Of a DNA stretch of 64,000 nucleotides, positions 1 through 7,912 are shown piece by piece (position 1 is the first letter of the stretch; every line of letters starts with the position of its first letter). The stretch is from NCBI GenBank assembly GCA_977030845.1, contig OZ365112.1:13268001-13332000 (forward strand), given 5' to 3'. Below the pieces are notes generated by a model. That model was not told the origin of the DNA. It did no database searches and saw nothing but the letters and a program-made list of their open reading frames with translations. Source of the DNA: Fimbriosthenelais zetlandica (lineage: Eukaryota). The position numbers and the translations under genes are program-made.

Positions 1-3000
1 AGGAACACCATGCCCATCTGAAAGATTTTTATTGTTGTACAATAAAATAAACATAAATTGATGAGTGTTTCAAGCCATATTAAGTTAAAGATCTTTAAGC
101 CTTGCCTTCATCTCTTCACTGAGGGACAGACCCCTCTCCATGAATTCCTCCAGTGAGGTCTCAGTCACACCCAGTTTCGCCGGGAGTTCCCTGATCCTCC
201 TGATCACCAGTGGGTTAGATCCCTGGATGAACAGTCGGCCAAAGTCTGGATCCTCCAGGCAGGCGCGACACATGTCTCCCTGCAAATACAACCATGTTTT
301 TCCAATTTGCTCAAAGAACCAACATAAACGTCCTACTCCAATAGAATTAAATTGGAGGGCGATACCCACATAAACGTCCCAATCCAATAGAATTAAATTG
401 GAGGGCGATGCCCACATAAACGTCCTACTCCAATAGAATGATATTGGAGGGCGATACCCACATAAACGTCCCCGAGATTTAAAGGGCTATATCTGTACCT
501 TAATAGAATGATATTGGAGGGCGATACCCACATAAACGTCCCGAGAGAAACGAGATTTAAAGGGCTATATCTGTACCTTAATACCATCAGGAATTTTAGC
601 TGAAGCCTTGGTGATGAAGTGTAGAACATGTTTGATCTTGTTCCACTTCTGCCTAGCCTTGCCTGTGCCAGGATTCTGTCTCGGCATCATACTTGCCTTC
701 TGTCCTGACAGACCTTGAAGTGTGGATTTTGGCCGAGGTTGAGTCGAAACATGTGTACCGGTATCTGAAAATCCAGCAAAAATCATTAATCACCTTCATT
801 CCATGGGTCTATGTAATAAAGACTTTTGTGTTAATGCAAACTGACTTTTAAATTGGAACTCTGCATGGAAATGTCTAATTTAATAGCAATTACTTGATGT
901 GCTACTCTCGCCTTCCCATAGGCTATATCTCCTCCGTCCGCGGGTTGATGGTACAGATCTCAATGATCTAGGGAACCTGTAGTGCTTGTTATGGAGAACC
1001 ATCTCTGTCAGGGGGGCCTCCAGATCCCAGGGTAAACCTGTATACCTTTCAGCTAACAACCTCTCTTCTGCTGGCAGATCCTTCACTGTAACAGCATTGA
1101 TGGTGCTCGGAAGGCCATTTCTCTAAAATGACATTAAAACAATATAGAATAATTACCATTTAGAAATCTATTAAATATTAATAGATATTTTTCAGCAGGT
1201 TTACGGGAAAAGTAAATTACCTTCCGCCATTCATAAGACTGTTGTCGATACCTTATCTCCAGGGCTCTTTCTTGCCTCAGAACTTCATGAGTTTCTTGTG
1301 AAGGCAAACAGACTAAACAAAGATAAAGTTAACATCGGACATTATTGTATTCATACTAATTCCTGAAATATACTGCTATTTGTCAATAGAATAATATAAG
1401 TATCTAAAGTTTTAGATCAAAAATTGTCTTCCTAATAAATGGTCCAGGTATATAAAATTGGGTTTAAATAGTTTTGCACTGAATAATGTAAAAGCCACAC
1501 ATTACATTGTATATATAATAGTGTATACCATTGCCAGGCCTGAGGGTGATTTTTGAGGTGACCACTCTGTAACAGGGGAAGAAGATGGTCTGTGTATTGT
1601 CCATGTTGGTCAGACTCACATAACGCAGCATCCAGTCAGTAGTCAGCTGACGGTGTCGTACACCCAACGTCACCACCAGAATATCTCCCACGTCCTCGAC
1701 GTCAATCCTATAGCTACCCTTTTCTTCACTACTATCATGTCCATCTAACCTACGATCCAAGCGAGAAGCAACTGTCCGGCCAACCACACCTGCAATGAGT
1801 TTACACAATAATCATCTTTTTACATTTAACTTCCTTGGATATTCCTAACAATTTCTTACCCACTTTCTGGGAATATAACAAACTGAAACAGCAGGGTGCA
1901 ACACGACAAAGAATACACAACACATTAGCATTCTTTTTTCAGTAATTATTACTCACCTGTCAGTGTTATGAATACATCTACCATTCCACCTTTCCTTGTA
2001 TTCCCAGTGCTCAAGGTAACAATATAGGACACCATATTACTAGAAGGCCCGGGTCCTTCCCTCCTAGTGGTGAGGTTGATTTGGTTCATGTTTTTCAGTT
2101 CCAGTGTGGTGTACATGTTTGAATATGAGTAGTGGTAACTCTTGAAGTCCCACATAGAGGAAGGGGGCTGGATACAGAGACATTGGGGTCGGTTGACGAT
2201 GTTAAACGCTGTCCTGTTGACCGAAGTCGTATGAAGAGTAGTTGTGAAAATAAGATCCATTAAATCGAGCCAAGGGTGCTCTTTCTCATCCCAAATCTGA
2301 AAAATTATAAATCATGGTATGTGTTATTTTCGAAATACGGGTAATTATGGATTATAAGTATTATTTATAGTGGAAAAGTTCACACATTTTGTGGATTCCA
2401 GAGGTGTTCATCATCATTCACATTGCCCAGCATGTTGTGGATCTGGATCTGGAGGGAGTAGTGTATAGGACCATCATGTAGGCTCCTCACAAAACCTGAC
2501 CTCAGGTAATCCGCGGCCTTCCGGTTCCTCTCATCCCGCCCAAGCCCCCATGGTGTGTGCTGATCTTCAGGGCTGAGAAGGCCTGCAATCATTGGCATGG
2601 AATTGTGAATTAATCAATTACTGATATTTGCTAAATGAAAAGAAGAACTGAAAAATCTACTCTGACATTACCTGTTTCAGCATGGGTGCTGTTTGTAGGT
2701 ATGAGTCTGAATTTGATCATCCTGGGCTTCCCATCTTTAGTGACCAGCATGTATGGAAGTTGACTGTGGTAGTGCAGGTTGTTATAGGAAAATGGCGACC
2801 GCCTCAGACAGTCCACTAGTGCGAAAAAACTGTAGGCAAGAGATTCACTTTATTATACATCCATTCTCTAGGGGAAATAGGGATAATTTTTCCAATGAAA
2901 TATAGTTCCGTCTTCACAAGGCTATCTTGTACTACAAACAGTTAGAGATATATCATAGTGTATGGGAAAGGGGCTTACTAGTTCGGGTCCTTTTCACAGA

Positions 3001-4447
3001 GAGCTTGTATCTGGTGAGAGGAGGTGGAGGAGAGCACCTCGTAGAAGGTCTTACAGTTTCTGGCTAGCGCCGTCCTGCCAGTAAACAGGATGAGATCCAG
3101 AGGTCCGTCCTCATTCTGATCAGCAAACTTCAGAGCTGCTTGACGGACACAAGACGCAGCGTCATCCTCACATCTCACACCACAATGTCTACAGGAGAAA
3201 GAGTTCAAGTATAAGTACCAAAAATTTGGCACGGGAACCTTAGCAATATAGACAACCTGAAGCAATGTTTCCCGTGTCGTCCATACAAAATATAATAAAA
3301 TAGCAAGTTTTCCAATGTAGGCCTATGTTTAGCTTACCTTAGCCTTACTCGAAATCGTCTGTCTTTTGTGAAGAAATGATTCTCGGGTATAGCAGGATGA
3401 GGGCGGATGACAGCATAACCCATGGCGCCCACGGCATTACAATGTAGGGCCCCAGTACTGGAGGAAGTTATCAACTTCTTAATTTTAGACGATATATAAG
3501 ACAGACGGGCCTTACTGCCAAAACCAGTCTTGTGCTTCTGTAATAAAAACAAGAAAATTATATTGTTTTTACATATTTTTTTTTTTTTTGGGGGGGGGGG
3601 GATTGTATATCTTATAATTAATTAATTACTTTATTTTATTTCCGATTAGATATATATTATTTTTAGAAGGAAATATAAACTACAATCAAATAACTTTCTA
3701 ATTACGTAATAGACCTATCAGATATTGGTATGCATGTCACCATGACCCATGCCAATTACGGTGCTTTTTAAGAACATTATTTCTCGCTCATGAACTTGAT
3801 CATAAGGCAGGGTAATCATATTCCAGAAGGAATCGGCTTAAAGCATGCGGTCAAGTACATGACTTTATTGCAGATCAAGGTCGAGAATACTTAAGAAATT
3901 TAGAAGTGCACTAATTAACCAGTGTGTAGGTAGGAGTCATTTAGGAAAAGTTTCACATGTTAAACATTTTCTGCGGTCTGTGATTTTCCCTAAATATCTT
4001 TAATATCCGAAAAAAGTATTATGCTCATACACACCTTATTGCATTGGGTCACTCTCCTGAGGAATCTTTCACGTCCCAGCATATTCTCACTTATTTCCAG
4101 AGCCTGGTTTCTCCACGGTTCCTCATTCTCAAACACCTGATCCTCCAGGCTGTGGCTGTACAAATAAAAGACAAATTTTACAGTTAAACTTCCTTTTATG
4201 AAGGCAAATATTATCATGTGAAAGACACATTAATATTAAGTTCTTGGTCAAGTTTTGAAATTTAATTACGTAGAAAATCTGCTGAAAATCTATGATCAGA
4301 CCTGTCGAAATCTTCTGAAGTCTCTTCTAAAATAATCTCCATTTTCTTCGTGTCGTAACGGCTGTATGTGGGAAAGACAATGCTTCTCTGCTGTCTTTGC
4401 TGACACTCTCCCGCCTGGTCACTGCAGTCATCTCTCAAAACCTCCAT
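1..4447 (-). CDS. Catalase-like allene oxide synthase-PLAT-lipoxygenase fusion protein (AOS-LOX family), 3'-truncated at the window edge
   Basis: Phase-consistent exons: 4302-4447, 4035-4155, 3338-3537, 2979-3188, 2672-2829, 2386-2582, 1957-2296, 1529-1789, 1221-1312, 894-1122, 577-764, 106-279, 1-17 (partial). Catalase-like motifs ALHCNAVGAMG, VRLRHC, LKFADQNEDGPLDL, LRRSP..YHSQ, YSLQIQIH, WDEKEHPWLDL and TAFNIVNRP; PLAT motifs YIVTLSTG..DVFITLTG and DWML..FPCYR; LOX motifs RQQSYEW, DLPAEER and EDPDFGRLFIQGSNP. These are colinear with the recalled coral (Plexaura homomalla) AOS-8R-LOX. The start at 4447 is the first ATG after an in-frame stop, but an upstream exon is possible. Confidence 0.92.
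322..583. repeat. 46-bp minisatellite array in a LOX-domain intron
   Basis: The unit ACATAAACGTCCTACTCCAATAGAATTAAATTGGAGGGCGATACCC starts at 322, 368, 414, 460 and 530. Complete units contain CTCCAAT-N8-ATTGGAG. A 33-bp segment is duplicated at 473-505 and 551-583. Confidence 0.95.
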
Positions 4448-5414: not shown

Positions 5415-6611
5415 TCAATAACGATACAGCCTAAGATTCTGTAAGCCTAGTTGGAGCGAAAGATCATTACTATAACTATCAGTAGTAGATGCACTAGTAG
5501 CCCTGGACCCTCCTTCAGACTCCTCATCCCTTATACTAAACCTTTTCTTGTACAGCTCCTTTAAAGGCGATTTATTGCCGTTCTTCCAACCATTTCCCCA
5601 GGCATTTAAAGCTGATTCATTCTTAATTTCATCAGTAGAATCTGAACTAACTTTATCATTTATCTTGATAGACACAATGCTATTCTCAACAAAAGAAGAC
5701 TGAGGTTTATCAAACAGAGTATTGGATACATCTGAGCCATCGTCGGCATTTCTGTTGGTTCTGTCAATTTTGAACTGAAGCTTACACCCTTCGTCTTCTT
5801 TCAGCTCAGGTAAGGAGGATTTGGACCCATTATATTTGCTCATGACACTCGGCGAATGAGGGTTTGGCAAAGGTTTATCTTTATCGAGCAATATCTTGTA
5901 AGGCTTCCATTTTGGCTTTGTGAAATCAACTACAACGTCTTCTTCCAGACCACTGAAAAAGCCAGCAAAGCAATCCCCATCCTTGTCAGTTTTGTCTTTA
6001 GTTTTCTCCAAGAAAGTATCAAATCTCCTTTTCACATCTTCTTGTATTGAACTTGGGCTTGGTTTAGGGAGTAACGGAGGTTTCTTATAGGCAGAGTTAA
6101 CAAGGTTGCGCCATGGAGCATTCTTTTTTATTGGCCGAGTATATTGGGACTGACGCAGCACATCACGAACTGATTCCATTATTTCAGCCGGAGTTTTCTC
6201 CATCTCGAACCAGGCAATGTTTTCAACACTTCCTCCCATAGCAGACCCGTCAGACAGGCGATGCATCGACATTCTAGTCGAGTCATGAAACGTCATACTT
6301 CTAGAATCCATTTTACTGCCAACTTGATTGACCTTTCTAAAATTCTGAAGCGAAAGTTTTCTTTTTCTTCCCTCTATTTCTATCTGCCTTGGTAATTCCT
6401 CGTCAAAATATATTCGGCGAATATCGCACTTCATTGTGTAAAGTTTATGACGTAATTTCCTGTCATAATCGTTGAGACGCTGATGGAGGACGAGACCTTG
6501 TTGGTGGTTTTTACGGTGTGCTCGCAGCATCCGGTCACTATTGGATACCAGGTCTATCACTTGTACTGGTCGCCCCACTGTCTCCCCTTTTCGTCGTCGA
6601 CAGCGCGACAT
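5415..6611 (-). CDS. Intronless uncharacterised protein (~398 aa); N-terminal basic coiled coil (possibly CCDC190/DUF4697-like), rest low-complexity
   Basis: Uninterrupted ORF of about 1.2 kb in AT-rich DNA. The track start at 6626 is GTG; the first ATG is at 6611. The segment HRKNHQQGLVLHQRLNDYDRKLRHKLYTMKCDIRR looks like a coiled coil. The family assignment is tentative. Confidence 0.75.
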   Translation of the reverse strand: MSRCRRRKGETVGRPVQVIDLVSNSDRMLRAHRKNHQQGLVLHQRLNDYDRKLRHKLYTMKCDIRRIYFDEELPRQIEIEGRKRKLSLQNFRKVNQVGSKMDSRSMTFHDSTRMSMHRLSDGSAMGGSVENIAWFEMEKTPAEIMESVRDVLRQSQYTRPIKKNAPWRNLVNSAYKKPPLLPKPSPSSIQEDVKRRFDTFLEKTKDKTDKDGDCFAGFFSGLEEDVVVDFTKPKWKPYKILLDKDKPLPNPHSPSVMSKYNGSKSSLPELKEDEGCKLQFKIDRTNRNADDGSDVSNTLFDKPQSSFVENSIVSIKINDKVSSDSTDEIKNESALNAWGNGWKNGNKSPLKELYKKRFSIRDEESEGGSRATSASTTDSYSNDLSLQLGLQNLRLYRY

Positions 6612-7912
6612 GTCCCCACAGTTCACTTTCCTCCAAATGTCGAAAGAAAATTATCCACAGACACGGGAGAAAACCAAATAAAAGCTAGCTTTTGTAGCCT
6701 ATCTGAATTTTCTATTTCTCCACCTGGTTTGCGAAAGTATTATGTTGTCGCAGAAACTGCTATTTATCCAAGGTAAATCATAAATCAGTCAGTCCCTTAT
6801 GAATCCTTGGTGAAGATTGAACTTTGTATTGCAGTGACAAGAATGATATCCTAAGGGAAATAGCCAAGGGAAATGCGCCTTCATTCAATACGAATTTACC
6901 TCTGATGAAAAAGGGGTGGGGGGAGAGCTGGTATTCAGCCATGTGTGGTAAACTGTGACAAGTATAATGGGAAATGTATTTTATCATGTATATTATAAGT
7001 ATGTCTAAGTATATGCTGCTTTATCTCGCCCTTCAAACTGACTAGGATCCCGTCCTGGGTATTGGCACAGGGTTTGTCACACCCCGGCATGGGTCTTGCC
7101 ACTAGCTTGGTGAGAGACCAATATTAGTTTGGAAGATCTACCAGTTTGGAGAATTGTTTTACACAAGCCTATCACAAGCTTGGTGGCATAAACATGATAC
7201 TGCTTAGCTGTTAAAAAATATATATGAACTTAAAAAATTGATGAAGATAACCAAAAATATTTGTATAGATCTATTCATATATGTCCAATTGACATACTGC
7301 ATTTATACTATTTTTTCCATTGTACAAACAGATTTATTTAAGTATTGGAACAGCGCTACAAACACCTAAAGTCCCTACCATAGCCAACCATTAAAACTTG
7401 CAATAAACAGAAAGCAAAATTGCTCCACAGTTGGTCTTACCGGTAATGAATGACGTACAGGACCAGCAGGTTACCGAAGACATAACTAACAGTTTATCTA
7501 GCACTTTGGTCACTGTTACCAATAGTTACGACTTTTAACACTAGAGACATTCCCCAAATAAAAACCATCCAATAGAATCCAAGATTCATCCAGACATCAG
7601 GCACAAAATGTGCAGCCCTAAGATCTAAACAGGGATAATCTATCAGGACATTGTGCCTTAACAGTCAATACGTAAAACGTGGAAACTTTCCAGGGTCTGG
7701 GAATGGACTTGATTCAAATAATCCATACAATCAGCAAGGATACATAAGGATACTAATTCAAATAGAACATCCAAATATCAAATAGATAGTATTGGACTTT
7801 CAAGCGAAGAGTCAAATTTAATTTAGTATTAAATATTATACTAAATGGTACACGTTCCATGGGGATATCAAACTGAGGAAGGATACAAAACTTCTCTCCA
7901 CAAACGAGAAGT

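Follow-up and report, generated by a model that had tools for sequence, protein, structure and literature searches.

A lipoxygenase-fused, catalase-related domain in Fimbriosthenelais zetlandica has a remodelled haem pocket and is unlikely to be a true allene oxide synthase

Gene model and domain architecture

The window analyzed here is a stretch of 64,000 nucleotides from Fimbriosthenelais zetlandica (assembly GCA_977030845.1, contig OZ365112.1, positions 13,268,001 to 13,332,000), and all coordinates below are counted within it. Its first 4,447 nucleotides carry a gene whose predicted product consists, from the N- to the C-terminus, of a catalase-related domain resembling coral allene oxide synthase (AOS), a PLAT domain, and the start of a lipoxygenase (LOX). 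The haem pocket of the catalase-related domain is remodelled in this gene and throughout a clade of related loci; the protein is clearly homologous to an AOS but is probably not a true one.

The gene model was assembled from reading frames and splice sites on the minus strand (4447-1). Within the window it has 13 predicted exons and 777 codons with no stop codon; 11 of its 12 introns are GT-AG and one is GC-AG, and the gene exits the window at position 1. The catalase-like interval (3537-1957, minus strand) corresponds to exons A-E, all five with GT-AG junctions. A second copy of the AOS-LOX gene was looked for in the window and was not found. The exons are given below, where P0029 is the protein of Lingula anatina and L002 is one of the related loci described later.

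4302..4447, minus strand: putative first coding exon, with a putative ATG at 4447, an open frame and a GT-AG junction to exon 2
4035..4155, minus strand: exon 2, N-terminal helical segment before the catalase-like core, aligning to the N-termini of Lingula P0029 and L002
3338..3537, minus strand: exon A, with G64, L66, H67 and the first two bases of the R102 codon (HMMER, 1u5u residues 64-101)
2979..3188, minus strand: exon B, with the invariant KFADQNEDGPLDLIL block and F137 (HMMER, 1u5u residues 103-148; 19 homologous fragments aligned)
2672..2829, minus strand: exon C, with Y193 changed to H (HMMER, 1u5u residues 173-217)
2386..2582, minus strand: exon D, with the LQIQIH block (HMMER, 1u5u residues 230-278)
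1957..2296, minus strand: exon E, with the proximal helix (Y349, Y353, K359/N360), a linker and the start of PLAT (HMMER, 1u5u residues 292-354)
1529..1789, minus strand: exon F, PLAT/LH2 domain (Pfam PF01477, E = 9.4e-8, exceeding the curated cut-off)
1221..1312, minus strand: exon G, PLAT-LOX linker (spliced frame continues; homologous to L002)
894..1122, minus strand: exon H, start of the LOX region (spliced frame continues)
577..764, minus strand: exon I, LOX region (spliced frame continues)
106..279, minus strand: exon J, encoding the N-terminal portion of the LOX catalytic domain, with the GC-AG intron coming next (HMMER, human 5-LOX and 3dy5)
1..17, minus strand: opening bases of the following LOX exon, supported by the reading frame and by its homology to Lingula and L002 (IQ.G..F motif)

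Exon J matches residues 246-294 of human 5-LOX (E = 2.9e-7) and residues 600-650 of 3dy5 in HMMER searches. The GC donor that follows it (104-105; AAG/GCAAGG, the slash marking the junction) is supported because homology to both L002 and Lingula extends over the junction.

Homology of exons A-E to coral AOS

The exons were translated in frame, and each was searched singly against PDB sequences with HMMER. The AOS of Plexaura homomalla (1u5u_A/3dy5_A) was the best match for each of exons A-E, and the five alignments are colinear and gapless. Exon B aligned with 1u5u residues 103-148 (E = 2.9e-5), exon C with residues 173-217 (E = 1.6e-5, with a weak match also to 3e4w), exon D with residues 230-278 (E = 3e-7), and exon E with residues 292-354 (E = 2.8e-6). 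The match of exon A to residues 64-101 is weak by itself (E = 0.46), which is the kind of result expected if the alignment were at fault and the canonical Asn and Arg lay one or two residues off the positions considered below. Such an artefact is hardly credible, because the five exon alignments are gapless and colinear, and the flanking motifs are identical, namely DGPLD..TG around position 137 and the VG.xG spacing after position 67. An xxYT segment is aligned at position 353 (vaVYT in 1u5u, nmYT in the window), no Asn occurs near 137, and one has to go more than 25 residues downstream of 349, to about position 377, to reach the nearest Arg. An earlier note on this DNA, made from the letters of the sequence, had allowed that a proper alignment might place Asn or Arg at the changed positions; the alignment does not do so.

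Pfam searches with single exons A-E gave no match to Catalase (PF00199) at E ≤ 1. Because even canonical relatives score weakly (P0031 reaches 28 bits, with a cut-off of 25), this miss on single exons is uninformative for family membership.

Haem-pocket residues of the window gene

In the catalase-related AOS, R64, R102 and R360 coordinate the haem, T66, H67 and N137 lie on the distal side, and Y353 is the proximal ligand (PMC5617202), and T66, H67, R349 and Y353 are listed as catalytically important (PMC5793058). By its title, Mashhadi et al. 2016 (cited through PMC8124189) considers the Thr-His pair to be a hallmark of those catalase-related enzymes whose substrates are fatty-acid hydroperoxides.

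In the window gene, R64 is replaced by Gly (codon GGG, 3453-3451), T66 by Leu (CTA, 3447-3445), N137 by Phe (TTT, 3085-3083), and R349 by Tyr (TAT, 2125-2123); the Thr-His pair of coral AOS is thus absent. R360 is replaced by Asn, with Lys at 359, and Y193 by His in exon C. The distal H67 (CAT, 3444-3442) and the proximal Y353 (TAC, 2113-2111) are retained, as is R102, whose codon is split by the intron between exons A and B (AG in exon A, A in exon B), so R102 is the only one of the three propionate-binding arginines (R64, R102, R360) that is left. What remains in the window gene is therefore the His/Tyr dyad with a single propionate arginine; five other named residues are lost. The earlier note had claimed a near-gapless alignment to P. 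homomalla AOS, the retention of His67 and Tyr353, the changes to G, L, F and Y at 64, 66, 137 and 349, a reading frame intact over all exons, and a coupling of the domain to a LOX; each of these claims holds, down to the codon coordinates.

The window protein lacks T66, N137, R349 and the complete set of propionate arginines. Its assignment to the catalase-related AOS fails on these four tested defining features, and it should not be filed as one. An ordinary AOS or lyase carrying tolerated substitutions, with the automatic annotation being correct, would agree with the homology and the architecture, both of which match coral AOS-LOX. It would also agree with Gao et al. 2008 (reference 25 in PMC5617202), which, by its title, reports that Asn137 mutations in coral AOS alter the rate and not the chemistry. 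This explanation is nevertheless improbable, given that four or five defining residues of the haem environment are changed together and that the hallmark Thr-His pair is not present; in addition, Pfam Catalase matches no piece of the window protein, whereas the canonical P0031 exceeds the cut-off.

Related loci and phylogeny

Relatives were collected in three ways. Exon E was used as a query against 1.84 billion cluster representatives and gave 47 matches, mostly single-exon open reading frame (ORF) fragments from assemblies and metagenomes; exon B, in a word-indexed search, gave 19 fragments with 55-68% identity; and contig look-ups with one metagenome scan led to 38 loci. The word-indexed search gave no candidate with enough common words for exon A, homologues of which were recovered from longer contigs only, and a protein-atlas look-up with exon E returned generic PLAT clusters only. 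Marine metagenomes, of the presumed gutless-worm type and others, supplied most of the related contigs, and most loci come from Joint Genome Institute (JGI) metagenomes whose record series is presumably one of gutless marine worm symbiosis samples. The nearest relatives with a name are P0029 of Lingula anatina, annotated as an "allene oxide synthase-lipoxygenase protein", and P0020 of Branchiostoma belcheri (XP_019646486.1).

In the maximum-likelihood tree, the window falls inside a distinct invertebrate clade of 17 loci (support 99/98), and the Lingula, Branchiostoma and canonical sequences fall outside it. The nearest relative is L001 (71% identity; support 99/93), and L003 joins these two with support of 88/83; this group of three is sister to the other clade loci with weak support (80/82). 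In L001 (355-711), exons C and D are fused with no intron between them, and the D/E intron is present, so an intron was gained or lost between the lineages of L001 and the window.

Two loci of the collection, L028 (GenBank whole-genome shotgun contig JAAUYG010155614.1) and L032 (an ENA metagenome scaffold), have identical exon A and exon B protein sequences, and this gene has an Ile-Arg-Arg distal motif with intact LOX histidines. Another non-canonical variant, P0040 (380 amino acids, Logan contig), keeps R64, R349 and Y353 and has Ser at 67 and Leu at 137.

Pocket positions across the clade

Residues were counted at each pocket position in 20 sequences for exon B, nine for exon A, and 21 clade representatives against 22 canonical cluster representatives for exon E.

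Position 64: clade Y4, N2, G1, A1, F1; canonical R in 8/8 with a residue
Position 66: clade R4, K3, L1, G1; canonical S or T
Position 67: clade R7, E1, H1 (n = 9); canonical H in 9/9 with a residue
Position 137: clade L10, F6, H1, R1, M1, N1 (n = 20); canonical N in 10/10
Position 349: clade W9, L6, C5, Y1 (n = 21), Arg 0/21; canonical R in 19/22
Position 353: clade Y16 plus L, H, W, C, F (n = 21); canonical Y in 21/22
Position 360: clade R9, H8, N3; canonical R in 17/22

The earlier note had proposed that conservation of G, L, F and Y in relatives be examined. The remodelling proved to be clade-wide, but the exact residues vary, and Tyr349 is seen in the window only; the nearest relative P0001 has Trp there, so the tyrosinate has no conserved hydrogen-bond partner. 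In exon B, the 20 sequences agree at every one of positions 122-131, 133, 138 and 139, and position 137, which lies between these, is variable. Tyr353 is the majority residue of the clade and ranks 29th in conservation among the 68 columns of exon E. Other residues are invariant in the clade only, namely T310, T320, N323, L331, S344 and E357, the last of which is Gln in canonical sequences. Constraint has shifted across the clade and has not been lost.

Among the nine clade sequences covering exon A, the window alone has His at 67, and its CAT codon is one transition from the CGT Arg codon of L029, L030 and L014. The retained His67 therefore says little for a conserved catalytic dyad. However, the contigs of the window's nearest relatives (P0001, P0002, P0005, P0007) are 0.6-1.6 kb long and do not include exon A, and the L003 contig begins just before exon B; as exon A of the L001/L003 subclade is not among the sequences, His67 could be either ancestral in the window's own subclade or a reversal.

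Selection on the gene

Between the window and L001, the proportions of nonsynonymous (pN) and synonymous (pS) differences were 0.193 and 0.705 over 238 codons, with omega at about 0.1, and the worm-type loci (a label that follows the presumed sample source) gave omega values of 0.02-0.08; these values are rough, as dS is saturated for most pairs, including the window and L001. The omega for L029/L030 includes intron matches and was disregarded. The near-invariant scaffold, the new clade-specific invariants, and pN well below pS indicate that the gene is under purifying selection and is not decaying, as the earlier note had suspected from the intact frame. The outcome that the note had set against its own proposal, a decaying gene with dN/dS near 1, does not agree with these values.

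A pseudogene whose catalytic residues are drifting without selection is accordingly very improbable and was rejected. It could account for the changed pocket residues, but it is contradicted by the intact frame with its consensus splice sites throughout, by pN far under pS, and by the long blocks that stay invariant through a deep clade.

Predicted fold and the partner LOX

The fold was modelled on Lingula residues 20-395, the nearest full-length relative with a protein identifier, from a 12-row alignment; the model is used for the fold only and not for pocket geometry. It has a mean predicted local distance difference test score of 86 and a predicted TM-score (pTM) of 0.87. The best structural match was 1u5u (TM-scores 0.87/0.90, root-mean-square deviation 2.1 Å, 365 columns), followed by true catalases with TM-scores of about 0.6, and chanoclavine synthase was also among the matches. 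Non-canonical bilaterian members are thus predicted to have kept the coral AOS scaffold.

The iron ligands of a LOX are provided by a His-x4-His motif, a His-x3-Asn/His motif and the C-terminal Ile. L002 and L028, both members of the clade, have the His-x4-His motif, and in L002 the third motif is seen as well, as His-x3-His, with His for Asn. Because these histidines are present in the two relatives, the fused LOX in the window's clade is probably active by analogy; the corresponding core of the window gene lies beyond position 1. In Lingula P0029, the two histidines of His-x4-His are replaced by Gly and Arg and the third His by Tyr, and in Branchiostoma P0020 the iron-ligand histidines are likewise replaced or deleted; judged by these residues, both proteins look like double pseudoenzymes.

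Interpretation of the remodelled pocket

We favour the reading that the domain has been repurposed, no longer carries out haem-dependent AOS chemistry, and serves the fused LOX, to which we give a probability of roughly 0.55. This reading is preferred because Arg349 is present in none of the 21 representatives and its replacement is unconserved, with Tyr in the window but Trp already in its nearest relative; because position 67 is Arg in most members; because a quarter of the representatives do without the proximal Tyr; and because two propionate arginines are lost. The catalase-type haem environment has been dismantled by the loss of Arg349, Asn137, Thr66 and two of the three propionate arginines, with replacements across the clade that are mostly hydrophobic or aromatic, or basic at 66-67. 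The fold, with its beta-barrel blocks and new clade-specific invariants, has at the same time been held by strong purifying selection. Haem-dependent AOS function may thus have been lost and the domain retained as a LOX-attached module with a structural, regulatory, or lipid- or hydroperoxide-binding role. At 137 and 349 the replacements are bulky and either hydrophobic or aromatic, as might be expected if an emptied cofactor site were being filled, and the conserved Lys/Arg-Arg at 66-67 of the sister group with the invariant Glu357 could hint at new binding, perhaps of a lipid carboxylate.

Several observations weigh against this reading. The window gene retains His67, Tyr353 and Arg102, and His67 may be an ancestral residue of its subclade; Tyr353 is kept by 16 of the 21 representatives. 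The Leu-His of the window gene also resembles the Val-His of true catalases. In corals, Asn137 mutations are tolerated to judge from the title of Gao et al. 2008, and three stony-coral AOS-LOX paralogues have altered residues at T66, R349 or Y353 (A. millepora c002903, A. digitifera XM_015912608.1, and O. faveolata XP_020618715.1; PMC5793058).

Many of these observations would fit the main alternative, in which haem is still bound through Tyr353 with His67 as the distal base, and a modified hydroperoxide reaction other than allene oxide synthesis takes place in a more hydrophobic pocket with L66, F137 and Y349. The domain would then be a new type of catalase-related oxylipin enzyme, coupled to the LOX. 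This alternative is possible but is, from the sequences, the less probable account. The residues kept in the window gene, the Tyr353 majority, the strongly purifying selection, and the LOX that appears active in L002 and L028 are all in its favour, as are the tolerated Asn137 mutants and the varied chemistry hosted by the catalase fold, such as coral hydroperoxide lyase (PMC5617202) and chanoclavine synthase. However, Arg349 is missing in all 21 clade members with W, L, C or Y in its place, Arg occupies position 67 in seven of nine members with the window's CAT only one transition away, five of 21 members have replaced Tyr353, and just one of the three propionate arginines remains. The Glu that is invariant at 357 also counts against haem, as we presume from catalases in general that this position lies near the propionate side.

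A more specific form of the same idea can be put forward only tentatively, namely that haem is bound through Tyr353 in a novel distal pocket (Leu-His here, Lys/Arg-Arg in most relatives, with neither Asn nor Arg349) and performs a new transformation of the LOX hydroperoxide. If so, an undescribed oxylipin branch would be widespread in marine invertebrates.

The earlier note had offered three options, namely that the domain has new chemistry, that its haem site is altered, or that it is a module without haem. The remodelling itself is confirmed and the clade data lean away from canonical AOS chemistry, but the three options are not separable by sequence. Its suggestion of an uncharacterised oxylipin pathway is plausible for the window gene.

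In scallop, clam, mussel, oyster, pteropod, snail and octopus, studies list genes automatically named "allene oxide synthase-lipoxygenase" among the immune or stress genes with differential expression; these molluscan genes are known here by annotation name. Where the domain is without most of the AOS-defining residues, the AOS name is probably wrong, and so would be an oxylipin pathway inferred from it. If the domain is haem-free, a conserved catalase-fold module regulating a LOX would be a clear case of a pseudoenzyme, and if haem is bound, a Tyr-ligand enzyme without Arg349 or Asn137 would extend the range of reactions known for the catalase fold.

Other features of the locus

The intron that separates LOX exons I and J contains a 46-bp tandem repeat (318-472; 3.4 copies, 90% matches). 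Upstream of the AOS-LOX gene there are two long uninterrupted ORFs, which are listed below.

5415-6626, minus strand: ORF of 403 amino acids
7913-10993, plus strand: ORF of 1026 amino acids, rich in Lys, Glu and Ser

Comparison with known systems

In the literature searched, no study of the biochemistry or structure of AOS-LOX homologues from lophotrochozoans or other bilaterians was found, and the AOS-LOX name for such proteins appeared there as automatic annotation only, in expression and proteome studies. The closest published remark to the pocket remodelling described here concerns the three variant stony-coral paralogues (PMC5793058).

The P. homomalla AOS-8R-lipoxygenase (1u5u, 3dy5) has, like the window gene, a catalase-related domain, PLAT and LOX, and the two are colinear over residues 64-354. 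They have in common His67, Tyr353 and Arg102 as well as the KFAD..DGPLD, LQIQIH, HPW and FNI blocks. The window protein differs from it by R64G, T66L, N137F, R349Y, R360N and Y193H, with an identity of about 30-35%, and shows no Pfam Catalase signal.

The same core fold is seen in true catalases and in 3e4w, the 33-kDa catalase-related protein of M. avium, as compared through the Lingula model, with 13-18% identity. True catalases keep the Asn, the Arg-x3-Tyr motif and three propionate arginines, whereas the window domain falls below the Pfam Catalase model.

Lingula P0029 and Branchiostoma P0020 are, like the window protein, bilaterian fusion homologues with non-canonical pockets. The Lingula protein has S/F at 64, S at 137 and L at 349 and keeps Y353, and its His is one residue off position 67 in the gapless alignment; the Branchiostoma protein has F66 and D137. 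Unlike the window's clade, in which L002 and L028 keep the LOX iron-ligand histidines, both have lost them.

The hydroperoxide lyase-LOX fusion of Capnella imbricata (cHPL-LOX) is a precedent for a changed reaction on the same fusion scaffold (PMC5617202). It keeps all defined catalytic and haem residues and owes its specificity to residues of the substrate channel (PMC5617202), whereas in the window gene the haem environment itself is altered. The stony-coral variants are isolated, uncharacterised paralogues that exist beside canonical copies; in contrast, the set of changes in the window gene is coherent, selected and clade-wide.

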